Source of the DNA: Caecitellus pseudoparvulus
Taxonomy: Eukaryota; Protista; Bigyra: Bicosoecida
Length of the DNA stretch: 64,000 nucleotides
Reading direction: 5' to 3'
Assembly: GCA_965644315.1 (NCBI GenBank)
Contig: CBFFRQ010000030.1
Span: forward strand, 62,001 to 126,000
Part shown: piece after piece, positions 23,301 to 42,955 of the stretch
How positions within the stretch are numbered: the first letter of the stretch is position 1
How the letters are laid out: the number at the start of each line of letters is the position of its first letter
The notes under the pieces: generated by a model
The model's input: the letters and a program-made list of their open reading frames with translations, nothing else
Databases searched by the model: none
What the model was told of the DNA's origin: nothing
Position numbers and translations under genes: made by a program

Positions 23301-26300
23301 CACCCCCGCTTCCTGCCCCTCCAGCACCAGGCTACCCACACAGGCCCAGTGGTGGCCGCCCGTGGCCGCTGCACCGGGCAGCGTGTCACTGCTCTGTCGT
23401 TTCCACAGCAGCACCTCGCCGCCACGGTTTCCCGCCAGCGCCACAGCCAGCAACTGGCCGCCCGGACAGCTGCTGATGCCCACGATCCTGCGCCCAGCCT
23501 TGGCAGTCACAGCCTTGGAGTCGCCGGAGCTGGGCTGGTGCCCCAGCGCACTGCCCACAGTGGTGTCAAGCACCGGCGCTTCCTCCTCCTCCTCCTCATC
23601 CCCCACCTCCAGCACCGTCTGGCCTGCGGTTCGCAGATCCTCCACCACCACGCGCCCGCCCGCTGCGAACGCCAGCAAGCCAGACTCGGCGTCCCACGCG
23701 ACGCCCCGCCGGCAACCAATGTCCAGACCCAGCACCTTCATCTCCCGCATGAGGGTGGGCGCGGCGGCAGCAGTGTCTGTGGCGTCACCATGCACACCCT
23801 CATCGCACTGCTCTGTCGGCGGGTCAGGGGGAGCAGCAGCGTGGGGGGAGGGGGCGACCTTGGCCCAGGGCGAGGCCAGACTGGCCTCCTCGTCAGTGGT
23901 CATATCATCCTCATCATGCCCGTCGTCCCCGCCGTCCCAGTGAGATCCAGCCTCAGTGCTGACGTCGCTCACGCCCCTGGCGTGGCGCCCACGTGGCTTC
24001 AGCGGGGTGATGTCAAACTCCACCTCGCTGTCACCCTCCCCAAACTCCGCAGAGATGCCCACAGCGCCCCCCACTGAGCCGTCTCCGCCGACAGACGACT
24101 CCCCAGCCTCTGAGAATGCCCCCGCCTGCACGGACACGAAGCCGTGTGCTGCGGACTCCGCTGGCGCCACACGCGCCCAGCCACTGTCTGCCCGCCCGTC
24201 GAACGTGGAGGCCATGGATGCGTCCAAGTGCGCTGGAGTGCCTGCATCGTCCCGTGCCTGCATGCCAGCGGTGCTGCCCTCCCCGAAGGACATGTCTCGA
24301 GGGTGAACGGGGGGCAGGGCGGGGGGACGCACGGGGCCAATGTCGGGGGTGGGAGACGGCCCCACTGCAAAGCTGCCTTGGATGACGCCCCCTCGAGGAG
24401 GGGACACCCCCCCCTCCGTGCCTGGGCCAGTGCCAGACCACTCCTCTGACACTTCAGCCGTGGCCTCAGGCAGCCCGCCCCCTCCATTGCCGAGCAAGTG
24501 CGTGGTGCTGGGGGAGTGCGCCATGCGGCGTTCAGCTGGACTGGGGCTGCTGCTGGCGCCACCGCCACCAGGAGCACCCTCATGTGTCGCTGTGTTGAGC
24601 GGCGGGGCAGGGGCTGGGGTCGCCTCGTCGTCTGCCTGAGCCACAGAACTGCTGGCCCCACGCACAGCATGCACTTGCACTGCCACGGTGGAGGGCGCAA
24701 GGTACTCCCACACATACAGCGCACCTGCTCCAGTGCCAGCATCAGAAGGCATGCTCGAGCCCACTGCGCTTGCTGCTGCCGCTGCCGTGGTGGCGTGTGG
24801 CGCGTTGCCCGAGGGGGGTGGGACGGTCGTCATGACCACCCCTCGCCCGTCAGGCGTGAACAGGATGCTAGACAGCGCACCCAGGCCAGTGTGCAGTCTG
24901 TGGCCCAGGGGCACAGCACGTGGGGGACCCGCAAGCGTCGCGTCAAAGGCGCTGATCGTTCCGCTGCCGCCCCCAGCAAGCACCGTGCTGCCGTCACCCG
25001 TCACGTCCAACGCCGCCACACCACGCGTCTGGGCTGCGTGCAGTACACTTGCCGCTGCCCTGGCATTGTCGTGGGGTTGGGACAGGGCTTGTTTCAAGGC
25101 GCCCAGTTGCCGTGGTGGGTGTGCCCCCCGCACCTGCTGCAACACCTTGCGTGAAGCCACGTCCCACCGCACCAGGCGCCCATCCAGCGTCCCACCCACA
25201 ACACACCTCCCATCCGGAGAGAACACAAGGCGAGTGATGCCAAGGGGTGCACGTGCTTCTCGTGGCAAGCCTACACCGGTGACTGGCTGGCCGTGCAGTG
25301 CCGAGCGACCCCCTGCGGCGAGGTTGGCGGCGCGACCAGCCTGCGCTGCCGCAGCTGCCGCCGCTTCCCCAGCAGGCTGCCGAGGGGAGGGAATGGGCAA
25401 TTGACCGAGCAGGGACAAGGAATAGGGGTCCAACAAGTACACCGCAGCAGTGCTGTCCACGCCAGACGTGTTTAGCTCATCGCAGGCGCCAGAAAATGCG
25501 ACGGCAAGGGTCGAGCCATCGGGGGCCACCGCCAACGCACAGGCGAGGGCGAGGTGGGAGATGCCCACGCTGCTGCCGCTGCTGGGAAGCCGGGCTGGGG
25601 AGTGTGACGTCAGCATCTTCATGGGCAGGTAGCTGTGCGCCGCGTCGTACACGCAAACCGAGCCATCTCGTGCGGCAGAGAAGAGAAGTGGCGTGGTCGG
25701 GTCGGGAAGGAACGCAAGCTGAGCAACCGGTGCCGTGTGCTGGGAGTACTCTTCCAGAGTCGCTGCTGCAGCCACGTCAAAGACACGCAGGCAGCCAGTG
25801 GCAAAGCCCGCCACGAGCAGCTGCGGTGCGCTTCTCTGCTGTGCGGGCGGCAGGGCAGCCCCCCGCCCATCCACCCACACAAACGACGGCGCAAATGCCA
25901 GGCAAGTTGCCGTGTCGTCCACATTGCGCAGGCGGAACTCTGCCTGCTGCTCCCAGCCAGTCAGCCCCCACACCCGAATGGTGCCGTCAGTGCTCGCGGT
26001 AGCGACAGTCGGAGCTGGAGCTGCAGCAATGCTGGCAGCCGTCGCAGCGCTGCGAAAAACGTCCTCAGGAGTGCCATCTTGCACGCCAGAGGCTGGCGGC
26101 ACCACGACAGGCAGCGGGTTCACTGCCACAGCCAGCACCGGGGCGGTGTGGGAGCGCAGAATGACGCGGTGCTCGTGCGCCGCGACATCCAGGCGCCCGA
26201 CGCTTCCGTCCAACGCAGTGGTGACAAGGGTCAGCCCTGATGGGTGCAGAGCCACACCTGTGACGGGGCAGTCGTACCTGGCTTCCAGGAAAAAGGCGGA

Positions 26301-29063: not shown

Positions 29064-29332
29064 GGTGCGTCTGGCGTCTCCTCGCAGCGGCCTCTGACTG
29101 GAGCCCGCACTGGGGCGCTGGCACTGAATTGGGAAGCGCTGAACGATATTTTTGACTACAACCAGCCTCGGGCTTTGAATGTATGTCGCCCTCGGCACTG
29201 ATCTTCTCCCCCTGCACCGCCCAAGCTGCCCCTGACCATGGCGCAGCCCACACTGCCCACGCAAGCCCAGCCACGCACCAGTGAGTGAAACCCGAGCCCA
29301 CACCCATCCATTCTTTCAAGTCTGAGCGTGCC

Positions 29333-30604
29333 TCACGATGAAAGGTCGTCCAGGGTCATGGGCCCCAGGCGGCCGAGCCGAAACATGGACACCAGCCTCT
29401 GCGCCGCCGCATCCGTATCCGGGACACCGCCCGCATCCACCAGCCCCCACTGCCCAGCCAGCTGACGCAGCACTTCCCATGAGTCGGGATGCAGGTGTGG
29501 CAGCGCCAGAGCCGCCCGAAACGCCTTGCTGCGTGTGTCCCGGGCGTGGCACAGGAGAAAATGTGCCAGTTCGTCAGCAGGCACACTTGCATCAGGCAGG
29601 GCGCCACACAGGGCCAGCTTCACGCCCTGTGCCGTGTCTTGGATGCGTGGGACGAGGATGCCAGGCGAGTCCATGAGGAACACGGCGGGGTCGGTGCTGA
29701 CGGGGAAGGCCGACGTGAAACGCGTCACGCCAGCCTTGCGCCCCGTCACAGGGCCCCGCCGCCGCTTGCCCCTTCGCTTGGACCCTTGTCCAGCCTGTGC
29801 CACCGCTTTGATCAAACTGCTCTTGCCAGCGTTGGGCACACCCAGAACGAGAAACACGGAGCCTGGAGCGGCGAACGCAGTAGGGCCGTGCAGCAGGCAG
29901 AAGCGGGGACTGGGCACATGACTTTGCCAAAATGGGCGCCGAGACTCACCTGCTGGCCGGTGTCCAGCACCTGCAACCTCCACCAAATGCTCCACAAACT
30001 GCGAATCAGCGGGCTGTGCATGAACCGCTGCCAGCCTTGCAGGGCTGCGAATCGAAACCGCACCCTTCGCACTGATCTCTGGGAGTGAGAGCTGACAAAC
30101 ATCGTTTCCTGCCCTTCTCTGGACAGCCGCTCCCGGATCACCTGCAAAGGGAGCGCGCATTCGCTGTGCGAGAGTGCGTCGCCCCCAAAGCAATTTCCGC
30201 AAACTCCGCACCGCTTGCATACGCGGGGCGGCGAGATCTGCCTTGTTGAACACCACCACGTGCTGCCGATCACCAATGACCTCTCGTACCACAGGGGTTG
30301 TTGATGACAGTGGCACCTGCACGCCGTCACAATGGTGTAAATGCAGTGCAGCGATGCTGGCTGGCTCATCCCCACTCACCCTTGCGTCCCGCACTTCCAC
30401 CACGCCGTCGCACTCTGCGATCTTCAGCTTCATGGAGTCGATGGCCTTGGCCATATGCCCTGGAAACCAAGATATGCTGCCCCCCAGGTGCGGCACGTAG
30501 GAAGACGCGAGGCGTCGCGGTGCCGGCTGCTGCGCCACTTGACCCGCAGCCCAACCTGGAAGCAAGCGCACAGCCCCCGACGCCGGGGCTGCCCAGCGCC
30601 ACAT
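29333..30604 (-). CDS. MTG1: Mitochondrial ribosome-assembly circularly permuted GTPase (MTG1/RbgA)
   Basis: SWFPGHMAKA, EVRDAR|VPLSS, NKADL, GVPNAGKSSLI, GVTR, DSPGIL, FRLGRLG. Introns 30317-30379, 30142-30211, 29999-30063 and 29863-29949. Confidence 0.92.
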   Translation of the reverse strand: MWRWAAPASGAVRLLPGWAAGQVAQQPAPRRLASSYVPHLGGSISWFPGHMAKAIDSMKLKIAECDGVVEVRDARVSGDEPASIAALHLHHCDGVQVPLSSTTPVVREVIGDRQHVVVFNKADLAAPRMQAVRSLRKLLWGRRTLAQRMRAPFAGDPGAAVQRRAGNDVCQLSLPEISAKGAVSIRSPARLAAVHAQPADSQFVEHLVEVAGAGHRPAGESRRPFWQSHVPSPRFCLLHGPTAFAAPGSVFLVLGVPNAGKSSLIKAVAQAGQGSKRRGKRRRGPVTGRKAGVTRFTSAFPVSTDPAVFLMDSPGILVPRIQDTAQGVKLALCGALPDASVPADELAHFLLCHARDTRSKAFRAALALPHLHPDSWEVLRQLAGQWGLVDAGGVPDTDAAAQRLVSMFRLGRLGPMTLDDLSS

Positions 30605-31415
30605 GCTGTAAACAGGAAGGGGTGCCTCAAAGGTGCTCTGTTTGCTCGTGGGCTTTCGTTGGTACGCGGAGCGTGGAGTCTGAATTGTGCCCAGCGCGCT
30701 TCTGACACAAAGAGACCGCGCTCATTCAACCAAGGCTGCTTGCATGCAAAGGCTGCAATGCCCCTTGGACTGTCAGTTGTGTCACAGTTTCGCACGACAA
30801 GAAATGCCAGTGTCGACCTCATGTGGGCGCCTACGCGGCTTGACAGGAAGCCTGGGGCATGCGGCCTGCAGGGAAGAAGGCTGTCGTTCGCCTGCGGAGT
30901 GGGTCGAGACCACTGCCAAAATATGGGTCAATAAACTGTCTATAGTGATCAGCTTAAGAGAGCGGCCTCGAATGCCTGCTGGAGAATGCAGCCAAGTCCC
31001 GACCTGGCCTGCAGAGCCCTGCTGCAAAGTGGTTGACCCCTTGAAAATGAAAGAAAGCAGTGCCAAATCACACCAGCACAAGGACCGTTGGTGCGGGGTT
31101 ATCAAGTCAAAATGTCATGATCGGTGAGTCTGAAGGGTCTGCTTCGCTCCGCTCAGACCGGGCCTGCTGTGACTCCGCAGAGCTTGCTACGCAAGCACAA
31201 AACACACCGTCCCAACCCATCGCCTGTGGACCGGTTATCCGTTTTCCGTATCCTGAACACCTCTATGCATCGGTTGGCATGTGAACCAGCCCCGTGTGTG
31301 CTTCAGTATTGATCCCCTGGAAACTGACCACCTGCAACTCCCGCACATTCCGCCCACGCTGTACCAGGGCACCGCTTTCGCTGCCAAAGACACGTGCATC
31401 TTCCCATTAGCCGCA

Positions 31416-34103
31416 ATGCCCATAAAAGAAGAGCTAAAAGGACCCGTTTTGAGGCAATGCGTGGCGTGTGGTACTCCGCGCGCTCTGCACTTCCTTCTCG
31501 GGGTGTGCCTGGCTCTGCTGCACTCCGCCAGATTCACACACGGCGAAGAAACTGAGCCAACAACGACTAGACCGCAAAATGAGCATGTTCTACCCACTGA
31601 CAAGACGTACCACACACTTGGTAGCCGAAAGTTGACAACTTGGAGCACCCCAACGGTTCCAAGAGGATTGGCTGCCGGTTTTGACCCGTGCGCGGCGTCA
31701 CACCCTATGGTCGAAGGGGAAAGCCATTCGTGCTGCATCGGCACTGACAGGCGGGCCTGGTGCAAAGGGAGCAACGAGTACCTTCAAACGCTTGGAGCTG
31801 AAGGAGAGACGCAGCTTGACTATGCACACGTTGAAGGCCTGCCGCCTGGCAACGTCACTCACATCGTCGCCGGGCTCAGGTTCTCTTGTGCGTACATGGC
31901 ACACGCTGAGCTGTACTGCTGGGGCGATGACACGCATGGGCAAATATCCCTTGTCCCCTCAACTTCTGGTCAAGTGAGTAGGCCAACAACCTTGGTCTTT
32001 GACGATCTGCCAGCCGCGTCCAAGCTGGTTGCAGGGAACACACACCTGTGCGCTTTGTTTGACATGGGTGAATTTGAAGGTTGGTTGAATTGCTGGGGGC
32101 GCCCAACTGACGAATGTGGATCCATGTATGAGTTGCCAGGAAGTTCCTCCACCTCAATTATGTCCTCTTTCTCAACCTTAGAGTCCCTAGCTCTTGTCGA
32201 AGGCGAGTTCGAAGCCCTGGACGTCTGCGCATTTGGGGGAACCACCTGTGCACTGCTAGTCATCTTAGACGAAGTTTGGGTTGTGTGCGGAGGGGGCATT
32301 CGGGGCGGTGTTGTCACGAGCTTGAACGTGACAGCCTCCCCACTGACAGGCTTGGAGCGACTGACCTGTGGCGGGGACGTGTGCGTTGAGCACAGCCCGC
32401 TGGCCGAATGCTGGACAGTGCCAGACTGCAAAGCGACGACTTCGCCAACGCCTTCCATGTCTCCGGCAAGCTCTCTTTCCCCTTCAGGCACACCAACGGC
32501 CTCCCTGTCTGTAGCCTCAACAGCTGCAACGATACTGTCCTCGTCGTTACCCCCAATGCCAAGTGCCTTTGCGACCCAGACCACAACAGCAAGTGTCTCA
32601 ACGTCTGCACAGATGGCACAAACTAAAACACCGAATTCCACAACATCGACTACTTTACTTCCGACTTCTACCGCACTCGTGTCCAGAACGCCAAGTGCCA
32701 CCCCAAGTGTATCAGCCAATTCGACCTTCCCGACCACGGTCAGCTCTTCACCAACGCCATCAGCAAGTGCTTTTCCGAGTGCCTCGCCAACAGCACCCAC
32801 GACACCCACAATCGCACCCACTTCATTCTCAACACCTACGGGCTCACCCTCGTCCACTGTATCCACGACGCCCACTGGCTCTTCCTCTCCCACTGCATCC
32901 ACCACACCCACTTCCTCGCCAACTACGTCTGCGACTTCGGCCATCGTTCCTCCAACACCATTCTCTACCACACCCACCATCCCACCTTCTCCAAGCACTG
33001 CGCCATCCTCCCCTCCCAGCCCCGACCCAACATCAACCTCCACGCCACAGCCCACCATCCACGCAACACAGCCCAACTCCACCCTCACCGATACAAACAA
33101 CCAGGTGCCCCCCTCCGACACAGACCAGTCGACATCCGGCGGCAACGCCACAGCTCCACCCCCCACATCCGACACACAGCCCGCCCCCTTCACACACGCC
33201 ATGGCCGTCCCCGGCACACCTGCATTCTACACACTCATCGGCGCCGCCCTCGCACTGGCCCTCCTCGCCGCTGTGGCCTTGACACTACTCAGACGGTACA
33301 GGCGCCGCCACCCGCCCTCAGCCATATCCCCCTCACACCGCCTGCAGCACTCACACAGCAAGCGCCACATCAAAGGCATCAACCCCATGCACACACCGCG
33401 CACAGGCACCAGCGCCCTGCGTGCTGACCAGTCCGCAGTGCGGCCACTCCCCCGTGCCCTGTCCCTGTCGTCGGACCTGCAGCTGCTGCCGGGGCACCGG
33501 GCCTCCATCATTGGCGACGCCACAGTGGCCATGCACGTGCTGGCAGCAAATGGCCACGCACAGCAGCACGATGCCAAGGCTGCACCCGGATCACGTGTCG
33601 CAGCAGGCACAGCCACCACCCCCACTGCCCTCAACGGCCGCCTCGTGGCCGGTGCACATGCCAGCGGGCAGCGGGCTGGCACAGCGACTGTTGCACGGGA
33701 AGCAGGACGAGCGGCCAACCGCCACCTGTCCATGGCCCGTGCGGCACATGTGCGGTCCCTGCTCACCCGGTACGATGACGGCCGCTCCTCGCCTGGCAAG
33801 GCCCGCCCCACGACAGCCAAGCGGGCCCAGCGCCGGCGCTTCTCCACACACACAGTGCGGCGGCAAGCCAGCGGGATCCACGAGCCGGCGCTCAACGCTG
33901 GCGACGTGTCTCGTGGCTATGCAGCGGTGCACATGGCGGGGACAGTGCAAGTGGTCACCTCACAACAGGGTAGTCTGGCGGGCACACGTCAAGGTGCACC
34001 GAGGGCACAGTCTGCTGTGCGCGGTGTGGTGCAGGGGCTGGGCTGGGCCCGTGCACAGCAGGCACGGTCACGTCGGCGTCAGAGGGGTGGACGGGGGACG
34101 TGA
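31416..34103 (+). CDS. RCC1-like-repeat, mucin-stalk type I membrane protein, paralog A
   Basis: First in-frame ATG at 31416; signal-like LHFLLGVCLALL; repeats GESHSCC..AWCKG, AGLRFSCA..LYCWGDD, AGNTHLCA..NCWG; S/T/P stalk; TM FYTLIGAALALALLAAVALTLL followed by RR. Confidence 0.8.
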   Translation: MPIKEELKGPVLRQCVACGTPRALHFLLGVCLALLHSARFTHGEETEPTTTRPQNEHVLPTDKTYHTLGSRKLTTWSTPTVPRGLAAGFDPCAASHPMVEGESHSCCIGTDRRAWCKGSNEYLQTLGAEGETQLDYAHVEGLPPGNVTHIVAGLRFSCAYMAHAELYCWGDDTHGQISLVPSTSGQVSRPTTLVFDDLPAASKLVAGNTHLCALFDMGEFEGWLNCWGRPTDECGSMYELPGSSSTSIMSSFSTLESLALVEGEFEALDVCAFGGTTCALLVILDEVWVVCGGGIRGGVVTSLNVTASPLTGLERLTCGGDVCVEHSPLAECWTVPDCKATTSPTPSMSPASSLSPSGTPTASLSVASTAATILSSSLPPMPSAFATQTTTASVSTSAQMAQTKTPNSTTSTTLLPTSTALVSRTPSATPSVSANSTFPTTVSSSPTPSASAFPSASPTAPTTPTIAPTSFSTPTGSPSSTVSTTPTGSSSPTASTTPTSSPTTSATSAIVPPTPFSTTPTIPPSPSTAPSSPPSPDPTSTSTPQPTIHATQPNSTLTDTNNQVPPSDTDQSTSGGNATAPPPTSDTQPAPFTHAMAVPGTPAFYTLIGAALALALLAAVALTLLRRYRRRHPPSAISPSHRLQHSHSKRHIKGINPMHTPRTGTSALRADQSAVRPLPRALSLSSDLQLLPGHRASIIGDATVAMHVLAANGHAQQHDAKAAPGSRVAAGTATTPTALNGRLVAGAHASGQRAGTATVAREAGRAANRHLSMARAAHVRSLLTRYDDGRSSPGKARPTTAKRAQRRRFSTHTVRRQASGIHEPALNAGDVSRGYAAVHMAGTVQVVTSQQGSLAGTRQGAPRAQSAVRGVVQGLGWARAQQARSRRRQRGGRGT

Positions 34104-34120
34104 TGACGGTCGCGAGCGTG

Positions 34121-34195
34121 CTACATGACTTTCCAGAAGCGTTGTTGTGCTTGGACGGAGATGGTGAGGGCGTGCATGAACTCTGGCTGGGGAGG
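34121..34195 (-). pseudogene. Duplicated 3' stub of the LRR gene (PQPEFMHALTISVQAQQRFWKVM*)
   Basis: Near-identical to 41574-41648, the end of the LRR gene. Confidence 0.75.
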
Positions 34196-34596
34196 CAATG
34201 CTTGAGAGAGTCGCGCACATCCATTGTTTGCTTGATGCATGGAAGTTGTTGAATGCTTGGTTTCCCTTGTTGTTGTGTGTTCTATTTCTGCACCCGGGTG
34301 AGGCGACAGTGGGGCTGAGGTAGGGCGTGCTGCGTGCCAGCACGTTTGTGACTCCAGCGAAACTTCAATGCAACGCCATCGCAAAATCTGACTCATCCTC
34401 AGATCTTCAGTCAAAGTGTAAGAAAACCACGCTGTATGGTGTCAAAAGAGTTCCCCGCCACTTGCTGCTATCATCTTGCTTGCATTCGCTGTGGCTCAAC
34501 TTCGCAGATTCCGCAAGTCCCGCAAGCACCAGCCCGGACAACGCCACGAGGAAAGTTTCCAAGTTGAGCGACTGGGTGGGCTTTCTACACTTGAAA

Positions 34597-37500
34597 ATGA
34601 CGTCCAAGTCTGCACAGTTGCTTCACCGCACCAGCCGTGGCAGGTCAGACGCGGTGCAGCTGCTGTTGTTGGTATGCCTCCTGCTTCAGGCTTCTGACAG
34701 CCTGGCCTTCCGTGACACAAACAGCTCAAACAAGCATGATGCACACATGACCCATACATACCTTGTATCAACTACAGCAGCGTCACGTGGGACTGATTCA
34801 TCTGGCTCTTGGGGCGCCCCCAGGGCTCTGGCTCCACTCAGCCCATGCTCACCCTCGCTTGACGTGGCTGCGGGGACGAGCCATGCGTGCTGTATCGGGA
34901 CTGATGAGCGTGCCTGGTGCAGAGGTGCGAACTCGTACTTCCAAAGTCTTGGTGAGGGGGGAGGCTGCAATGACACGTTCAGCAAAGTTCGCCACTTGCC
35001 GGCCATCGAAGTGACCTCCATCGCTGTGGGGAGCAAGCACTCCTGTGCTGTAGTGGTAGGTGAGGGTGTGTACTGCTGGGGCGACGATACCTTTGGCCAG
35101 ATTTCCTCCACACCTTCAACCACTGGCCAAGTGAGTAGGGAAACAGATCTTGCGCTGAGCACTTCGGACACAATCGAAAAGGTGGTCACTGGAAACTCGC
35201 ACACGTGCTTCATCTACGGGTTTAGCGGGCTGTTTAATGGTGTCAGATGCTGGGGACAACCGTCAAACGACTGTGGAACTGCGTTTGCAAAGCTTGGAAC
35301 AGCGTCAGACTCAGAACCACCAAGATTCATCGAGGAGGTAGAGCCATCACTTGCGGGGGTACCCATGATCCCGATCGACATCTGCGCCTTCGGAGCACAC
35401 ACATGTGTACTCTTGATTGAAACCAACACGTTGTGGACTGTTTGCGGTGGGGGGGGATTCGAACTCAGTGAAAGCGTTCCTCTTGGAACATCCTCAACGT
35501 ATTTCACCGGAGATGAAAAGCTCTCTTGCTCAACATCAGTGTGTCTTGAGAACAGCCCTTTCGGAAAGTGCTGGCCAGTCAGCGAATGTCCAATCCTTCC
35601 AAGCTCTGGCCCGATTGCCGCTTACTGTCCACCATCGCCCTCCCCAACTCCAACTTCTGGACCTTCGACAACACCATCAGCTACACCGTTGACAACGCAA
35701 ACAGCCTGGCCCTCCCCATCCACGACAACCACGGCATCAGGTCCAGCGTCACCCTCCACATCGCCTACTGCGTCTACAACAACCACGGCATCAGGTCCAG
35801 CGACGCCATCCACATCGCCTACTGCGTCTACAACAACCACGGCATCAGGTCCAGCGACGCCATCCACATCGCCTACTGCGTCTACAACAACCACGGCATC
35901 AGGTCCAGCGTCACCCTCCACATCGCCTACTGCGTCTACAACAACCACGGCATCAGGTCCAGCGTCACCCTCCACATCGCCTACTGCGTCTACAACAACC
36001 ACGGCATCAGGTCCAGCGACGCCATCCACATCGCCGACAGCGTCTACGACAACCACGGCATCAGGTCCAGCGACGCCATCCACATCGCCGACGGCGTCTA
36101 CAACAACCACGGCATCAGGTCCAGCGACGCCATCCACATCGCCGACGGCGTCTACGACAACCACAGGCTCGCTGTCGCCGACTACATCCACAACACCCAC
36201 AAGCTCGGCCTCGCCCACTGCATCCACGACGCCCACTGGCTCACCCTCGCCTACTGGCTCACCCTCGCCCACTGCATCCATCACGCCCACTGGCTCACCG
36301 TCACCCACTGCATCCATCACGCCCACTGGTACACCCTCGCCCACTGCATCTACCACGCCCACTGGATCACCCTCGCCCACTGCATCCAGCACGCCCACTG
36401 GCTCACCGTCGCCCTCTGCATCCAGTACGCCCACTGGTACACCCTCACCCACTGCATCCACTACGCCCACTGGCTCACCATCGCCCACTGCATCTACAAT
36501 ACTGACTGGTAAACTGTCGCCCACTGCATCTACAATACTGACTGGGTCACCGCTGCCCTCTGCATCCACGATGCCCACTGGCTCACCGTCACCCTCTGCA
36601 TCCACGACGCCCACTGAGGCGCCCTCGCCCACTGCATCCAGTACGCCCACTGGCTCGCCCTCACCCACTGCATCCACCACGCCCACTGGCTCACCGTCAC
36701 CCTCTGCATCTACCACGCTCACTGGCTCACCGTCGCCCACTGCATCCACGACGCCCACTGGCTCGCCCTCACCCACTGCATCCACGACGCCCACTGGCTC
36801 ACCGTCGCCCTCTGCATCTACCACGCTCACTGGCTCACCCTCGCCCACTTCATCCACCACGCCCACTGGATCACCCTCGCCCACTGCATCCACGACGCCC
36901 ACTGGCTCGCCCTCACCCACTGCATCCACCACGCCCACTGGCTCACCGTCGCCCTCTGCATCTACCACGCTCACTGGCTCACCCTCGCCCACTTCATCCA
37001 CCACGCCCACTGGATCACCCTCGCCCACTGCATCCACGACGCCCACTGGCTCACCGTCGCCCTCTGCATCCAGTACGCCCACTGGCTCACCCTCGCCCAC
37101 TGCATCTACCACGCCCACTGGCTCACCGTCGCCCTCTGCATCCACGACGCCCACTGGCTCACCCTCGCCCACTGCATCCACGACGCCCACTGGCTCACCG
37201 TCGCCCTCTGCATCTACCACGCTCACTGGCTCACCCTCGCCCACTTCATCCACCACGCCCACTGGCTCACCCTCGCCCACTGCATCTACCACGCCCACTG
37301 GCTCACCGTCGCCCACTGCATCCACGACGCCCACTGGATCACCGTCACCCACTGCATCCACGACTTCAACCATATCACCAACCACTTCATTTTCAGCCCC
37401 ACCCACTGGTACACCGTCACCCAGCACTGCACCGTCCACATCTCCCAGCTCAGGCCCCACATCACCACCCACCTCACAACCCAACTCCACACTCATCGAC

Positions 37501-38511
37501 ACAAGCCGCCAGGCCCCTCCCTCCGACAAGGAACAGTCGACTTCCGGCGGCAACGGCACAGCTCCACTCCCCACACCTGACAAACAGCCCGCCCCCTTCG
37601 CTCACGCCATGGCCGTCCCAGGCACACCTGCGTTCTACACACTCATCGGTGCCATCCTCGCACTGGCCCTCCTCGCCGCTGCGGCCCTAACCCTGCTCAG
37701 ACGACACAGGCGCCGCCATCTGCCTTCCGCAACACACACGCGCCGCCTGCAGCACTCACACAGCAAGCGCCACATCAAGGGCATCAACCCCATGCACACA
37801 CCGCGCACAGGCACCAGCGCCCTGCGTGCTGACCAGTCCGCAGTGCGGCCACTCCCCCGCGCCCTGTCCCTGTCGTCAGACCTGCAGCTGCTGCCGGGGC
37901 ACCGGGCCTCCATCATTGGCGACGCCACGGTGGCCATGCACGTGCTGGCAGCAGATGGCCACGCACAGCAGCACGACGCCAAGGCTGCACCCGGATCACG
38001 TGTCGCGGCAGGCACAGGCGCAGCACCCACTGCTCTCAGCGGCCGCTTCGTGGCTGGTGCACATGCCAGCGGGCAGCGGGCTGGCACAGCGACTGTTGCA
38101 CGGGAAGCAGGACGAGCGGCCAACCGCCACCTGTCCATGGCCCGTGCGGCACATGTGCGCTCCCTGCTCACTCGCTATGATGACGGCCGCTCCACGCCTG
38201 GCAGGGCCCGCCCCACGACAGCCAAGCGGGCCCAGCGCCGGCGCTTCTCCACCCACACAGTGCGGCGGCAAGCCAGCGGGATCCACGAGCCGGCGCTCAA
38301 CGCTGGTGATGTGTCTCGTGGCTATGCAGCGGTGCACATGGCGCTGCCAGCGCCAGAGGTCACCTCACAGCAGGGTAGTCTGGCGGGCACTCGCCGGGGT
38401 GCGCCAAGGGCACAGTCTGCTGTGCGCGGTGTGGTGCAGGGGCTGGGCTGGGCCCGTGCACAGCAGGCACGGTCACGTCGGCGTCAGAGGGGGGGACGGG
38501 GCATGTCATGA
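34597..38511 (+). CDS. RCC1-like-repeat, mucin-stalk type I membrane protein, paralog B (longest stalk)
   Basis: Signal-like QLLLLVCLLLQA; AGTSHACC..AWCRG, VGSKHSCA..VYCWGDD, TGNSHTC..RCWG; tandem-repeat stalk; same TM and tail as paralogs A and C. Confidence 0.82.
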   Translation: MTSKSAQLLHRTSRGRSDAVQLLLLVCLLLQASDSLAFRDTNSSNKHDAHMTHTYLVSTTAASRGTDSSGSWGAPRALAPLSPCSPSLDVAAGTSHACCIGTDERAWCRGANSYFQSLGEGGGCNDTFSKVRHLPAIEVTSIAVGSKHSCAVVVGEGVYCWGDDTFGQISSTPSTTGQVSRETDLALSTSDTIEKVVTGNSHTCFIYGFSGLFNGVRCWGQPSNDCGTAFAKLGTASDSEPPRFIEEVEPSLAGVPMIPIDICAFGAHTCVLLIETNTLWTVCGGGGFELSESVPLGTSSTYFTGDEKLSCSTSVCLENSPFGKCWPVSECPILPSSGPIAAYCPPSPSPTPTSGPSTTPSATPLTTQTAWPSPSTTTTASGPASPSTSPTASTTTTASGPATPSTSPTASTTTTASGPATPSTSPTASTTTTASGPASPSTSPTASTTTTASGPASPSTSPTASTTTTASGPATPSTSPTASTTTTASGPATPSTSPTASTTTTASGPATPSTSPTASTTTTGSLSPTTSTTPTSSASPTASTTPTGSPSPTGSPSPTASITPTGSPSPTASITPTGTPSPTASTTPTGSPSPTASSTPTGSPSPSASSTPTGTPSPTASTTPTGSPSPTASTILTGKLSPTASTILTGSPLPSASTMPTGSPSPSASTTPTEAPSPTASSTPTGSPSPTASTTPTGSPSPSASTTLTGSPSPTASTTPTGSPSPTASTTPTGSPSPSASTTLTGSPSPTSSTTPTGSPSPTASTTPTGSPSPTASTTPTGSPSPSASTTLTGSPSPTSSTTPTGSPSPTASTTPTGSPSPSASSTPTGSPSPTASTTPTGSPSPSASTTPTGSPSPTASTTPTGSPSPSASTTLTGSPSPTSSTTPTGSPSPTASTTPTGSPSPTASTTPTGSPSPTASTTSTISPTTSFSAPPTGTPSPSTAPSTSPSSGPTSPPTSQPNSTLIDTSRQAPPSDKEQSTSGGNGTAPLPTPDKQPAPFAHAMAVPGTPAFYTLIGAILALALLAAAALTLLRRHRRRHLPSATHTRRLQHSHSKRHIKGINPMHTPRTGTSALRADQSAVRPLPRALSLSSDLQLLPGHRASIIGDATVAMHVLAADGHAQQHDAKAAPGSRVAAGTGAAPTALSGRFVAGAHASGQRAGTATVAREAGRAANRHLSMARAAHVRSLLTRYDDGRSTPGRARPTTAKRAQRRRFSTHTVRRQASGIHEPALNAGDVSRGYAAVHMALPAPEVTSQQGSLAGTRRGAPRAQSAVRGVVQGLGWARAQQARSRRRQRGGRGMS
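35722..36153 (+). repeat. Coding minisatellite, 8 x 54 nt (TTTTASGPA[S/T]PSTSPTAS)
   Basis: Unit ACAACAACCACGGCATCAGGTCCAGCG...ACTGCGTCT is directly visible. Confidence 0.92.
36190..37359 (+). repeat. Coding minisatellite, about 32 x 36 nt (TTPTGSPSPTAS)
   Basis: Unit ACGACGCCCACTGGCTCACCCTCGCCCACTGCATCC with variants. Confidence 0.92.
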
Positions 38512-38525
38512 CGTGCGTGTGCGTG

Positions 38526-38600
38526 CTACATGACTTTCCAGAAGCGTCGTTGGGCTCGGACGGAGATGGTGAGGGCGTGCATGAACTCTGGCTGGGGAGG
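38526..38600 (-). pseudogene. Second duplicated 3' stub of the LRR gene
   Basis: Near-identical to 41574-41648, with two Q>R changes (VRAQRR). Confidence 0.75.
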
Positions 38601-39003
38601 CAATACTTGAAATTGTGGCGCACAACTAGTTTTTGTTTGATGCATGGATACGGTGTAAGGTTTGATTTACTTCGTTGCAGTACGTTCCTTTTTTTTACCC
38701 AGACCAGGCGAGGTTGATGCTCAGGGTGTAAAGGCTGCATGCCAGTCCGTTTGTGACTCCGTCTAAACTGCAATACAACGTTGTAGCCAAATCCGTCTCA
38801 TCCTCAATACTGCTGTCATGTCCCGAAAAAGGCATATTTAGCGATGTCAAGCAGCTTTCCTGTGGTTTTCTACTGCACTTCTTTCTTGGTTTTGTTGTGG
38901 CTCACCATCGCAGATTCCGCAAGACCCGCACACACCAGCTCCGACAACGCCACAACCATAGTCTCCCAGCTGAGCACCCAAACGGGCATTCCACGCTTGT
39001 CCA

Positions 39004-41559
39004 ATGGAGTCCAAGTCTACACAGCTGGCTCACTGCTCCAACCGTGCAAGCCCAGACGCGGTGAAGCGGCTGCTGCTGGCATGCCTTCTTCTGCAGGCTT
39101 TTGAGAGTCCCGCCTTCGGTGACACGGACAGCTCAAACAACCATGGCACACCCATGAAACTCAAACCGCCTGTGCCAACTACGGCAGCGTCGACTGGAAG
39201 TGATTCATCAAGCTACTGGGGTGCCCCCATGGCGCCCAGGGGCCTGGCTCCGCTTAGCCCTTGCTCACCCTCGTTTGACGTTGCTGTGGGGACGAGCCAT
39301 GCCTGTTGCATAGGGACTGATGGGCGTGCCTGGTGCAGAGGCGCGAACTCGTACTTTCAAAGTCTTGGTGAGGGAGGAGGCTGCAATGATACTTTCAACA
39401 CAGTCCACAACTTGCCGTCTTCCGAGGTAACCTCCATTGCTGTGGGCAGTAGGCATTCTTGTGCAGTGGTGCACAGCGAGGGGGTGTACTGCTGGGGCGA
39501 CGATACCTTTGGACAGGTTTCCTCCGTGCCATCAACTTCAGGCCAAGAAAGTCGAGAGACAACTTTTCTGCTGGGCACCACGGACACGATTGATAAGGTC
39601 GCCACCGGAAACTCGCACACGTGCTTCATGTACGGGGCTTCTCCGCCACCACATGGTGTCGTATGCTGGGGGCACCCAACGGATGCTTGCGGAGGCGAGT
39701 TTGATAATCTTCTACATGGGTCAATACTTGAACCAATACTTGAACCTTCGACATTCATTCTGGAAGCGGAGCCTTTGCTAGAAGGGGTCGATGTGGTACC
39801 GATTGACATCTGTGCCTTTGGATCACACACATGTGTGCTGATGAGAGAGGAGACAAAGTTGTGGATAGTATGCGGTGGAGGTGGGTTCAACTTCAGTCAA
39901 ACCGTGCCCCTTGGGGAATCCTCCACCTACTCCACTGGCAATGAGACGATCTCATGCTCAACGTCAGTGTGTCTTGAAAACAGCCCAGTTGCAAAGTGCT
40001 GGGCAGTGGACGGGTGCGCACCTCCGACCAATCCTGCCACAGGTACCCTGTACTGCTCTACATCGCCCTCGGTAACTCCTACATCTTCGACGTCAGCCAC
40101 TGCAAGAGTAACAGCGTCCACGACGCCCACTGGCTCACCCTCGCCCACTGCATCCACCACGCCCACTGGTACACCGTCGCCCTCTGCATCCACCACGCCC
40201 ACTGGCTCACCCTCGCCCACTGCATCCACGACGCCCACTGGCTCACCCTCGCCCACTGCATCCACGACGCCCACTGGCTCACCGTCACCCACTGCATCCA
40301 CCACGCCCACTGGCTCACCCTCGCCCACTGCATCTACCACGCCCACTGGCTCACCGTCGCCCACTGCATCCACCACGCCCACTGGCTCACCGTCACCCAC
40401 TGCATCCACGACTTCAACCATATCACCAACCACTTCATTTTCAGCCCCACCCACTGGTACACCGTCACCCAGCACTGCACCGTCCACATCTCCCAGCTCA
40501 GGCCCCACATCACCACCCACCTCACAACCCAACTCCACACTCATCGACACAAGCCGCCAGGCCCCTCCCTCCGACAAGGAACAGTCGACTTCCGGCGGCA
40601 ACGGCACAGCTCCACTCCCCACACCTGACAAACAGCCCGCCCCCTTCGCTCACGCCATGGCCGTCCCAGGCACACCTGCGTTCTACACACTCATCGGTGC
40701 CATCCTCGCACTGGCCCTTCTCGCCGCTGCGGCCCTAACCCTGCTCAGACGACACAGGCGCCGCCATCTGCCTTCCGCAACACACACGCGCCGCCTGCAG
40801 CACTCACACAGCAAGCGCCACACCAAGGGCATCAACCCCATGCACACACCACACGCCGGCACCAGCGCCCTGCGTGCTGACCAGTCTGCCTTGCGGCCAC
40901 TCCCCCGTGCCCTGTCCCTGTCGTCAGACCTGCAGGTGCTGCCGGGGCACCGGGCCTCCATCATTGGCGACGCCACCGTAGCCATGCACGTGCTGGCAGC
41001 AGATGGCCACGCACAGCAGCATGATGTCAAGGCCGCCCCCGGCTCACGTGTCGCAACAGGCACAGGCGCAGCACCCACTGCACACAGCGGCCGCTTCGTG
41101 GCTGGTGCACATGCCAGCGGGCAGCGGGCTGGCACAGCGACTGTTGCACGGGAAGCAGGGCGGGCGGCCAACCGCCGACTGACCTTGGCCCGTGCGGCAA
41201 ACGTGCGCTCCCTGATCACTCGCTTCAATGGTGGCTGCCCCGCGTCTGGCAGGGCCCGCCCCACGACAGCCAAGCGGGCCCAGCGCCGGCGCTTCTCCAC
41301 ACACACGGTGCGGCGGCAAGCCAGCGGGATCCACGAGCCGGCGCTCAACGCTGGTGATGTGTCTCGTGGCTATGCAGCGGTGCACATGGCGGGGACAGTG
41401 CAAGTGGTCACCTCACAGCAGGGTAGTCTGGCGGGCACTCGCCGGGGTGCGCCAAGGGCACAGTCTGCTGTGCGCGGTGTGGTGCAGGGGCTGGGCTGGG
41501 CCCGTGCACAGCAGGCACGGTCACGTCGGCGTCAGAGGGGTGGACGGGGCATGTCATGA
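39004..41559 (+). CDS. RCC1-like-repeat, mucin-stalk type I membrane protein, paralog C
   Basis: Same architecture. Head is closest to paralog B; juxtamembrane DNA appears identical to paralog B. Confidence 0.85.
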   Translation: MESKSTQLAHCSNRASPDAVKRLLLACLLLQAFESPAFGDTDSSNNHGTPMKLKPPVPTTAASTGSDSSSYWGAPMAPRGLAPLSPCSPSFDVAVGTSHACCIGTDGRAWCRGANSYFQSLGEGGGCNDTFNTVHNLPSSEVTSIAVGSRHSCAVVHSEGVYCWGDDTFGQVSSVPSTSGQESRETTFLLGTTDTIDKVATGNSHTCFMYGASPPPHGVVCWGHPTDACGGEFDNLLHGSILEPILEPSTFILEAEPLLEGVDVVPIDICAFGSHTCVLMREETKLWIVCGGGGFNFSQTVPLGESSTYSTGNETISCSTSVCLENSPVAKCWAVDGCAPPTNPATGTLYCSTSPSVTPTSSTSATARVTASTTPTGSPSPTASTTPTGTPSPSASTTPTGSPSPTASTTPTGSPSPTASTTPTGSPSPTASTTPTGSPSPTASTTPTGSPSPTASTTPTGSPSPTASTTSTISPTTSFSAPPTGTPSPSTAPSTSPSSGPTSPPTSQPNSTLIDTSRQAPPSDKEQSTSGGNGTAPLPTPDKQPAPFAHAMAVPGTPAFYTLIGAILALALLAAAALTLLRRHRRRHLPSATHTRRLQHSHSKRHTKGINPMHTPHAGTSALRADQSALRPLPRALSLSSDLQVLPGHRASIIGDATVAMHVLAADGHAQQHDVKAAPGSRVATGTGAAPTAHSGRFVAGAHASGQRAGTATVAREAGRAANRRLTLARAANVRSLITRFNGGCPASGRARPTTAKRAQRRRFSTHTVRRQASGIHEPALNAGDVSRGYAAVHMAGTVQVVTSQQGSLAGTRRGAPRAQSAVRGVVQGLGWARAQQARSRRRQRGGRGMS
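40120..40407 (+). repeat. Coding minisatellite, 8 x 36 nt (TTPTGSPSPTAS)
   Basis: Same unit as in paralog B. Confidence 0.92.
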
Positions 41560-41573
41560 CGTGAGCGAGCGTG

Positions 41574-42797
41574 CTACATGACTTTCCAGAAGCGTTGTTG
41601 GGCTTGGACGGAGATGGTGAGGGCGTGCATGAACTCTGGTTGAGGAGGAGAGCAGCGAACAGTTTCCGGCGCTGCTCCGCCACTGGCTGCGGCTACAGCA
41701 ACAGTGTGCCTGACTGCAGGCTCAGTCGCCCCCGTATTTGCAATGGAGAGCATTTGCAATGCAAACTGACCTTTCTCGCTTTCAACCGACGCAGCGAGAA
41801 GTGCCACGCCAAGATCAGCTGAAGTGAGATCAGCGTTGTCACTGACGTCCAAAGACTCCAAGCAAGGAAAGGCAGCGAGGATGTCTCCAACTCCCAGCCC
41901 ATTCATCTCAGTGTCGCTGACGTTCAAGCTTGCCAAGTGCGGCAGAGCGGACTCCGCACCTTCGGGCAGGGCACCAAGCGCCCGGCATCCGCTCAGGTCA
42001 AGCTCAGACACTGCCGAAGCCAGACACTCAAACAGGCACTTCCACGTCACACATGTACCTTGCAGGTTGACGCTACGCAGTTGTGGTGCTGCTCCCAGCA
42101 CAGCCGCAACGTCTGAGAGGCTCAGCTCACTTGCTCCGCCCAGCGACAGCTCGGTCAGGCAAGGCAGGGCCGTTGGGCAGCAGGGCAGTTCCGTCAAACG
42201 GGAACCTGACAGGTCCAGGGCTTGCAGGCCAGGCCAGGGGAGCGTGAGGTCCAGGGGGGGCGATGCCCACGAGTCATTGTCCAGCAACGCCACTTGCAGC
42301 GTTGCCCGACACGCTTCCAGCGCACCCCGAAGCTGAGCAGTTGCAAGCGGATCGGCGTGCATGCCCAGGTGCGGCATACAGCAGCCCGACAAAACAAGGT
42401 GCTGCAAGGTGGGGGCGCCTTCTCCGCCGGCTAAGTCGCTCGGCGGTGTCCGAACCACTGATGGGCACTTGACGCATCGCAGGCTCCGCACGCCAAGCTG
42501 GATCAGTGTCGCCACTGCGGACATGGTGACTTGGGTGAGTGAAGAGAGGGCCACTGCAGGCTGTGCGTGTTCCATGTCCGCTGCTTGCAGGAGAGTCAGC
42601 AGCGTGACGTCATCCACCTCGCCACCCTCGTCGCTGGCACTTTGCCAGATGCTCTGCAGCTGTGGGAGGGGAATGTTGCTGCTCTTGGCCACGATGTCTT
42701 CCACACGCCCGTCAAGGACTGCGTCAACCAGAACCTCCATGCATAGCTCATGCAGGGTGGGCACCACCTCAATGTCTTCAGCAACTGCCTCCTGCAT
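41574..42797 (-). CDS. Leucine-rich repeat protein with N-terminal BC-box-like motif
   Basis: VPTLHELCMEVL at the N-terminus; LRRs LQHLVLSGC, LQALDLSGS, LTELSLGG, LRSVNLQGT, ELDLSGC, LASLNVSDT, LESLDVSDN. Start could be 42887. Confidence 0.8.
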   Translation of the reverse strand: MQEAVAEDIEVVPTLHELCMEVLVDAVLDGRVEDIVAKSSNIPLPQLQSIWQSASDEGGEVDDVTLLTLLQAADMEHAQPAVALSSLTQVTMSAVATLIQLGVRSLRCVKCPSVVRTPPSDLAGGEGAPTLQHLVLSGCCMPHLGMHADPLATAQLRGALEACRATLQVALLDNDSWASPPLDLTLPWPGLQALDLSGSRLTELPCCPTALPCLTELSLGGASELSLSDVAAVLGAAPQLRSVNLQGTCVTWKCLFECLASAVSELDLSGCRALGALPEGAESALPHLASLNVSDTEMNGLGVGDILAAFPCLESLDVSDNADLTSADLGVALLAASVESEKGQFALQMLSIANTGATEPAVRHTVAVAAASGGAAPETVRCSPPQPEFMHALTISVQAQQRFWKVM

Positions 42798-42955
42798 GGT
42801 GAAGGCGTGGTCGGCGGTGCGGCACGAAATTCCGCACTCCAAGCCGCAAGCAGGATCCTGATGCTGGGCTTTCACAACACATCCCATGCACGGTCCCGCA
42901 CCACAGACCTTCCACGACCTTTCCGCTTCTGTGGGTGAAGTTTTCTAAATTGAAT

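Follow-up and report, generated by a model that had tools for sequence, protein, structure and literature searches.

The genome of the bicosoecid Caecitellus pseudoparvulus (NCBI GenBank assembly GCA_965644315.1) contains, within a 64,000-nucleotide stretch of contig CBFFRQ010000030.1 (positions 62,001 to 126,000 of the forward strand, hereafter the window), a tandem array of three paralogous genes, A, B and C, each of which encodes a signal peptide, a cysteine-rich head of RCC1-type repeats, a stalk dominated by serine, threonine and proline (S/T/P), one transmembrane (TM) helix and a long basic tail. The genes are intact and share one domain architecture, their orphan tails recur in the same genome behind heads of a different kind, their heads are under purifying selection, and their 3' halves have undergone gene conversion. 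The reading which best accommodates these features, and to which we give a probability of about 0.6, is that A, B and C are lineage-restricted type I transmembrane mucin-like surface proteins, probably receptors in adhesion or recognition whose tail is a non-enzymatic scaffold. A preliminary description, drawn from the letters of the window, had proposed a diversifying recognition system with variable heads and a constant signalling tail; its account of the architecture holds in most respects, but its account of the evolution is not supported.

The three proteins can be aligned from end to end, through the signal peptide, the Cys-rich head, the S/T/P stalk, the juxtamembrane segment, the single hydrophobic helix and the tail. 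All three are uninterrupted open reading frames (ORFs) on the forward strand for which no spliced model is needed, as expected of the intronless paralogs first described, and the start of each was taken as the first ATG ahead of the hydrophobic, signal-like segment (coordinates are collected in Table 1). One strong hydrophobic segment is present per protein (mean Kyte-Doolittle value 2.7). In the unique head parts of A, B and C, contigs from another sample of this organism show 0 differences, which rules out assembly error as the source of the three copies. Position 31168, given earlier as the start of the family region, is not a gene start; it is the beginning of a 9-mer, TGTGACTCC, which lies upstream of the first ATG (31416).

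By sequence and by predicted fold, the head belongs to the RCC1-repeat superfamily. It is 257–261 aa long, with 16 cysteines invariant across A, B and C, and contains five repeats of the pattern G..HxC...C(W/G)G, recognised by eye and by their spacing, at intervals of 52, 54, 71 and 44 aa. The Cys-paired RCC1-like repeats of the preliminary description are thus present, but they number five and not about four; the Cys pair is invariant in each, and the disulfide pairing is putative. Pfam RCC1_2 (PF13540) matches all three heads at 45.4–48.9 bits against a cut-off of 22, and RCC1 (PF00415) matches B and C at 23.8–24.4 bits against a cut-off of 21.7, with A at 17.8. The whole-domain model WD40_RLD reaches 51–60 bits against a cut-off of 150, the profile being matched in part only. 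In this regard, the heads fall short of a complete seven-bladed RCC1-like domain (RLD), since five repeats are recognisable in their 257–261 aa.

Searches with a profile of the three heads against the sequences of the PDB return HERC2 (E value 4e-19), UVR8 (1e-16), ACR4 (8e-8; 7A0J) and BLIP-II (3e-4), and RCC1 as well. An AlphaFold2 model of the head, computed from the three-sequence alignment, is all-beta, with a predicted template modelling score (pTM) of 0.63 and a mean predicted local distance difference test score (pLDDT) of 60.5. With this model, Foldseek finds the propellers of UVR8, HERC and RCC1 at E values of 2e-10 to 4e-7, and the VIA structural search finds RCC2 (Z 15.1, 215 of 261 residues), ACR4 (Z 11.0, root mean square deviation 3.3 over 164 residues) and BLIP-II (Z 10.8, deviation 2.9). 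The structural alignments span some 240–260 residues of these seven-bladed targets, that is, roughly five of seven blades. Confidence is below a pLDDT of 50 in model residues 1–6, at the N-terminus, and again in model residues 147–185, where some 40 residues of variable sequence are inserted between repeats 3 and 4; this insert is the least conserved stretch of the head. Profile, Pfam and fold matches agree, therefore, on the RCC1-, CRINKLY4- and BLIP-II-like head that had been put forward, the fold being that of a moderate-confidence model. Relatives of the head in a set of 5.8 billion proteins, queried with a full-length window and a head-length window, are generic, mostly bacterial RCC1-repeat proteins of at most 42% identity which match only at head positions of about 10–150. 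No head ortholog was found in that set or in JGI metagenome contigs.

An architectural parallel for such a head on a membrane protein is found in plants. ACR4/CRINKLY4 has seven blades, a pore-filling N-terminal strand, a Cys-rich domain like that of the tumour necrosis factor receptor (TNFR) and a cytoplasmic kinase (bioRxiv 10.1101/2020.08.10.245050; PDB 7A0J, 7A0K). Like it, the trio would consist of single-pass type I proteins whose extracellular part is an RCC1/BLIP-II-like propeller with a pair of cysteines in every repeat, and the head model superposes on ACR4 as given above. The differences are that the trio has five recognisable repeats and an added mucin stalk of 209–669 aa, and that general RCC1 proteins outscore ACR4 against its heads. 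Neither a TNFR domain nor any other Cys-rich domain is found after the head in Pfam at E values up to 1, the head passing directly into the stalk. Membership of the CRINKLY4/ACR4 family was thus considered and rejected, on the grounds of the five repeats, the lack of a TNFR-like domain and of a kinase, and the better scores to general RCC1 proteins. The best matches in both sequence and fold are instead the RCC1-like domains of RCC1, RCC2, HERC1/2, UVR8 and RPGR, together with bacterial RCC1-repeat surface proteins, with which the repeat signature G..H.C/A...G.v..WG is shared; those domains are, however, seven-bladed, the eukaryotic ones are cytosolic or nuclear, and the 16-Cys pattern and the last two repeats are peculiar to the trio. 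BLIP-II of Streptomyces (PDB 1JTD/3QHY) offers a further likeness, as a compact secreted RCC1-like propeller which serves as a protein-binding surface, but it is bacterial, soluble and seven-bladed, has no stalk, TM segment or tail, and is only weakly related in sequence.

Beyond the membrane, the tail is of a different character. It comprises 267 aa with an isoelectric point (pI) of 12 (43–45 R+K against 8–11 D+E), and the motifs NPMH, RALSLS, RASI and RRRFS are invariant among A, B and C; the short conserved motifs comprise KGxNPMH, about 25 residues past the helix, an RxS site and RRRFSTHTVRRQ. There is no Pfam match in the tail and no kinase (Pkinase), a profile of it finds nothing among PDB sequences at E values up to 1, and a feature search of the ESM Atlas gave no usable match. 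When 1.84 billion representative proteins were searched exhaustively with a profile, only two true matches emerged, both of them fragments from close relatives in a single series of ENA metagenomes. The earlier judgements that the tail lacks a kinase and that no described family is involved thus stand. Structure prediction is confident for the membrane helix alone (pLDDT 77–86), the remainder of the tail region lying at 31–48; the tail is predicted to be mostly disordered, with a low-confidence long helix at alignment positions 150–196, where the tail has its most conserved block.

A genome-wide search for copies places the tail in a wider context. Five tails are present in the 30.6-Mb genome, namely those of A, B and C and two at loci on contigs C40 and C155, and RCC1-type heads occur in three copies only. 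The C40 and C155 tails follow long arrays of leucine-rich repeats (LRR; LRR_8 in 17 stretches, with a match to the BspA-type LRR_5), a Cys-rich module and a mucin stalk. Since two of the tail copies stand behind LRR heads, the juxtamembrane segment, the TM helix and the tail make up a common cassette. The RCC1-type and LRR-type copies are homologous from an extracellular point some 25 residues ahead of the membrane (GN.TAP ... F.HA...PGT..FY) as far as the C-terminus, with 54–57% identity over the shared region. The signature of the cassette consists of the juxtamembrane F.HA...PGT..FY, the TM helix, KG.NPMH and the block GQ.AGTA.VAR.AG.AAN..L..ARAA.VRS, and is invariant in seven sequences (A, B, C, L028, L004, L026 and L029). 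Among these, L028 is a syntenic metagenome copy adjoining the same convergent LRR gene as does C, with a DNA identity of about 90.6%, and the L029/L030 metagenome fragment is an LRR-headed member of the tail family. The tail frame is coding, in that third-position differences exceed those at first and second positions and the ratio of nonsynonymous to synonymous divergence (dN/dS) is 0.25–0.5, whether the comparison is made with the LRR-type tails or with the ortholog L028. The comparison with BspA-like and other protist LRR surface proteins is, necessarily, one of cassette and not of head: two members of the tail family carry LRR_8/LRR_5 (BspA-type) arrays and a Cys-rich module, but the heads of the trio are RCC1-type. 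Judged from sequence, then, the cassette is real, modular and confined to the lineage as far as the databases go.

Two irregularities were seen among the relatives. In L029, a run of N at about 3790–3900, within the stalk, marks a scaffold gap. In the C40 copy (L026 about 4560–4692, reverse strand, equivalent to G000:C40 about 244560–244690), an in-frame TAA removes the last 45 or so tail residues, beyond which the reading still matches the family end GWAR...RRRR, such that either a truncation or an assembly error may be involved.

Between head and cassette lie stalks of 253 (A), 669 (B) and 209 aa (C), with an S+T+P content of 67–77%, which take up 25–51% of each protein and contain in-frame minisatellites in B and C (Table 1). 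The proteins have the architecture of membrane-tethered mucins (a P/T/S domain with tandem repeats, one TM segment and a cytoplasmic tail), which is a class and not a homologous family. No SEA match appears in Pfam, nor any other autoproteolytic module near the membrane. At our own estimate of roughly 0.25 nm per residue, the stalks would extend to about 50 nm (C), 60 nm (A) and 165 nm (B). Fungal Wsc1/Mid2 sensors, the signalling mucins Msb2/Hkr1 and animal MUC1/CD43 combine a folded or Cys-rich head, an O-glycosylated S/T-rich rod and one TM segment; their non-enzymatic tails recruit cytosolic partners, and tandem repeats set the length of the stalk. By analogy, the trio would follow the same design logic, with the differences that there is no sequence relation, that the head is an RCC1-type propeller and not a WSC or SEA domain, and that the tail, at 267 aa, is much longer and lacks known partners. 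The trio would accordingly be placed, on its sequence features, among membrane mucin-like receptors with a propeller head, a kind which is known, on a tail cassette without a known relative.

The prominence of the stalk raises the strongest of the competing explanations, in which the proteins form a passive glycocalyx or coat: the stalk is the functional part (in protection, anti-adhesion or as a barrier to viruses or grazers), the head a cap and the tail an anchor to the membrane or cortex, without ligand-specific sensing. The large share of the protein given to the stalk and its change of length through minisatellites are in keeping with such a coat, as is a polybasic disordered tail, which would adhere to acidic lipids. 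It is, however, hard to square a mere cap with purifying selection and 16 invariant Cys at a synonymous divergence (dS) above 2; moreover, the same cassette is joined to LRR heads, a typical binding domain, and the tail motifs are conserved between RCC1-type and LRR-type copies that are 54–57% identical. We regard a passive coat, on balance, as unlikely.

The second alternative concerns the contrast between heads and tails. The heads are indeed strongly diverged, A from B and C above all, and the TM and tail are nearly identical: head identity is 71% between C and B and 43% between C and A, against 92% and 88%, respectively, for TM and tail. Divergence was estimated for each domain by the method of Nei and Gojobori. 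Between B and C, the heads have a dS of 0.87 and a dN/dS of 0.22, and the TM segment has a dS of 0.03; for A with B and with C, head dS is above 2, in the saturated range, with a dN/dS of 0.21–0.26; in the tail, dS is 0.10–0.20 and dN/dS 0.24–0.45. Divergence is thus far from uniform across the domains, the synonymous divergence of the head being 4 to more than 10 times that of the tail, and dN/dS is below 1 in every one of them. In 25-codon windows along the B–C head, the ratio of nonsynonymous to synonymous differences (pN/pS) never exceeds 0.76, and its highest values, 0.73–0.76, fall in the loop and blade-3 region.

Within the 3' halves, identity is arranged as a mosaic. In blocks of 100 bp, B and C are 98–100% identical at 40368–40840, where A is 66–88% identical to them, and at 40844–41240 it is A and B that are 95–98% identical, with C the odd one out. 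With L028 included, four sequences can be compared, and of the 102 sites which support the grouping of B and C against A and L028, 87 lie in 40269–40827, with a sharp breakpoint near 40830, downstream of which all copies converge. In the strain that L028 represents (about 9% diverged; the strain comparisons rest on contigs), the copy next to the LRR gene has a stalk base and TM of the A type and not of the C type. The low tail dS together with the mosaic blocks of identity implies repeated gene conversion in the 3' half of the tandem array. The G+C content at third codon positions (GC3) is 0.56–0.61 in the heads, 0.53–0.57 in the stalks, 0.70–0.72 in TM and tail and 0.64–0.74 in neighbouring genes, and the higher GC3 of the homogenised 3' halves is compatible with GC-biased gene conversion. 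In other words, the contrast of variable head and constant tail follows from homogenisation of the tails and the age of the heads, and not from the rate of protein change; the codon comparisons indicate that the heads are old, conserved paralogs under purifying selection, more constrained at the protein level than the tails.

A diversifying recognition system, with heads evolving fast under positive selection (for prey, virus or self/non-self) on a tail held constant by function, is therefore rather improbable. It would draw on the greater difference between heads than between tails, on the pN/pS peak in the loop and blade-3 region, and on variation among strains. The locus is present in marine metagenomes at 5–9% divergence; in contigs of runs X5 and X10, 118 letters that cannot be aligned stand in place of 112 nt of the B head (35318–35431), a locally hypervariable spot between strains that takes in the variable insert and the first part of repeat 4, and the variants diverge by about 9% in the B head, about 5% in the A head and 2–5% in the flanks. 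Against this stand a whole-head dN/dS of 0.21–0.26 with no window above 1, a head dS of 4 to more than 10 times the tail's, such that age and homogenisation explain the contrast, a tail dN/dS which exceeds that of the heads, and three RCC1-head copies in 30.6 Mb, a small repertoire. With three sequences, a few positively selected loop sites may nonetheless be present. That the genes are non-functional, either decaying duplicates or frames left open by high G+C, is hardly credible and already largely refuted: it would suit the lack of RNA evidence, the long antisense ORFs which the GC-rich DNA of the window, at about 64% G+C, yields over the same stretch and the in-frame TAA of the C40 LRR-head relative, but the frames, of 851–1304 codons, run without a stop from the signal peptide through to the tail, all domains have a dN/dS well below 1 with a third-position excess in the forward frame, the domain matches are significant, and the frame is kept in the ortholog of the strain that is about 9% diverged.

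The origin of the array can be read from its flanks. A convergent gene for a cytosolic-type LRR protein, which begins MGC... and is not a family member, closes the array on its 3' side, and copies of its 3' end (the original, at 41574–41658, encodes ...PEFMHALTISVQAQQRFWKVM* in reverse complement) lie just past the stops of A and B. An exact 21-mer occurs at 34121, 38526 and 41574, where none is expected by chance. The LRR 3' end, copied after both A and B, thus marks the unit of tandem duplication, and in metagenome contig L028 the tail is likewise succeeded by this convergent LRR gene. The 9-mer TGTGACTCC has four matches in the window against 0.91 expected, of which three sit before the ATGs of A, B and C. 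Since its position is conserved although the upstream region of A cannot otherwise be aligned with those of B and C, it suggests itself as a candidate cis element common to the three genes, in the promoter or 5' leader; it is absent upstream of the LRR-headed relatives.

Table 1. Positions in the window of the three paralogs, their parts and associated features.
Feature	Positions	Strand	Remarks
Paralog A	31416–34103	+	895 aa, uninterrupted ORF
A, signal peptide		+	about aa 1–38
A, head	31659–32429	+	
A, stalk	32430–33185	+	degenerate S/T/P
A, juxtamembrane and TM helix	33186–33290	+	
A, tail	33300–34100	+	
Paralog B	34597–38511	+	1304 aa, uninterrupted ORF
B, head	34819–35589	+	
B, stalk	35590–37593	+	669 aa
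B, stalk minisatellite 1	35725–36164	+	in-frame, 54 bp x 8.1, 96% matches
B, stalk minisatellite 2	36230–37361	+	in-frame, 36 bp x 31.4, 85% matches
B, TM	37633–37698	+	
B, tail	to 38508	+	
Paralog C	39004–41559	+	851 aa, uninterrupted ORF
C, head	39235–40017	+	
C, stalk	40018–40641	+	
C, stalk minisatellite	40117–40409	+	in-frame, 36 bp x 8.1
C, juxtamembrane and TM	40642–40746	+	
C, tail	40747–41556	+	
Conversion tract	40269–40830	+	B/C 98–100% identical; A and L028 of another sequence type
TGTGACTCC 9-mer	31168–31176	+	248 nt before A ATG
TGTGACTCC 9-mer	34347–34355	+	250 nt before B ATG
TGTGACTCC 9-mer	38752–38760	+	252 nt before C ATG
LRR 3'-end copy 1	34121–34205	-	last ~24 codons and stop; 17 nt past A stop
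LRR 3'-end copy 2	38526–38610	-	14 nt past B stop
LRR gene	41574–42887	-	437 aa, cytosolic-type; convergent flank of array

Kinship of the convergent LRR gene to the tail family was also considered and rejected. The C-terminus of the LRR gene has PEFMHALTIS (41574–41660, reverse strand), and the juxtamembrane motif of the LRR-headed members (L026/L004) reads PSFMHALTIPG; the corresponding DNA match is 21 nt at 90% with an E value of 0.08, possibly due to chance. Upstream of the array, on the reverse strand, lie a 423-aa GTPase gene of MMR_HSR1 type (29333–30604) and a single open frame of 2989 codons (20334–29303) that contains WD40-like repeats and extended low-complexity regions. In run X8, which bears another organism label, one contig joins 30604, the start of the GTPase gene, to 34485, in the region upstream of B, and would thereby skip paralog A. 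On one side of the joint there are only 40 nt, and paralog A is spanned by a second X8 contig; the joint may reflect either copy-number variation or a chimera.

How receptors of this kind might operate can be outlined from their parts. The disulfide-rich head of five RCC1-type repeats would provide a beta-propeller-type binding surface, held by an O-glycosylatable stalk at tens to more than 100 nm from the membrane, and the heads of A, B and C would bind distinct extracellular ligands, for example surface molecules of prey or substrate. Binding or clustering would be relayed to the non-enzymatic tail, which may recruit cytosolic partners through its motifs and phosphorylatable sites; the tail may signal or it may anchor. 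The trio itself would have been born by tandem duplication of a unit adjoining the convergent LRR gene, its 3' halves subsequently held alike by repeated gene conversion and its heads left old and conserved. No chlorophyll a/b-binding-protein genes were found in the genome and the organism is therefore apparently a heterotroph; in a marine heterotroph, recognition of prey or substrate is the obvious candidate role.

Several points weigh against the receptor reading. Surface location, glycosylation and the existence of a ligand are, like signalling, things that we infer, and none of the RNA runs checked holds the A/B/C locus. Confidence in the head is moderate, its model being derived from three sequences, and the five repeats may or may not close into a ring. 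A docking or phospho-site role for the short motifs of the tail is guesswork. Lastly, dS values above about 1 are saturated, and the difference in GC3 between head and tail distorts the Nei-Gojobori values.

A bolder proposal, possible but doubtful, is that, in a bacterivorous flagellate, the cassette serves as a new signalling module without enzymatic activity, grafted by recombination and gene conversion onto interchangeable heads to give a small, modular system for recognising prey or surfaces. RCC1-type propellers in the array and LRR arrays elsewhere would then be exchangeable binding heads, and the tail would couple to the phagocytic or cytoskeletal machinery through its NPxH-type and basophilic-kinase motifs; alternatively, intramembrane cleavage might free a fragment of pI 12 whose end resembles a nuclear localisation signal. 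Tail dS between RCC1-type and LRR-type copies (0.66–0.82) lies below the head dS of A against B and C (above 2), which suggests a transfer of the cassette from one head class to the other that postdates the divergence of the heads, a comparison which saturation and GC3 bias weaken.

For tandem families more generally, a pattern of variable heads and constant tails should be tested at synonymous sites before diversifying selection is invoked; in this array it reflects concerted evolution. As to the proteins themselves, the extracellular disulfide-braced propeller of RCC1 type would exist beyond the plant CRINKLY4 kinases, on an orphan tail held in common with LRR-headed proteins. The means by which free-living, bacterium-feeding flagellates recognise prey or surfaces and keep hold of them are little known, and in this regard the locus offers a small set open to experiment, in which three heads share one fold but differ in sequence, the stalks vary widely in length and the tail is the same throughout.

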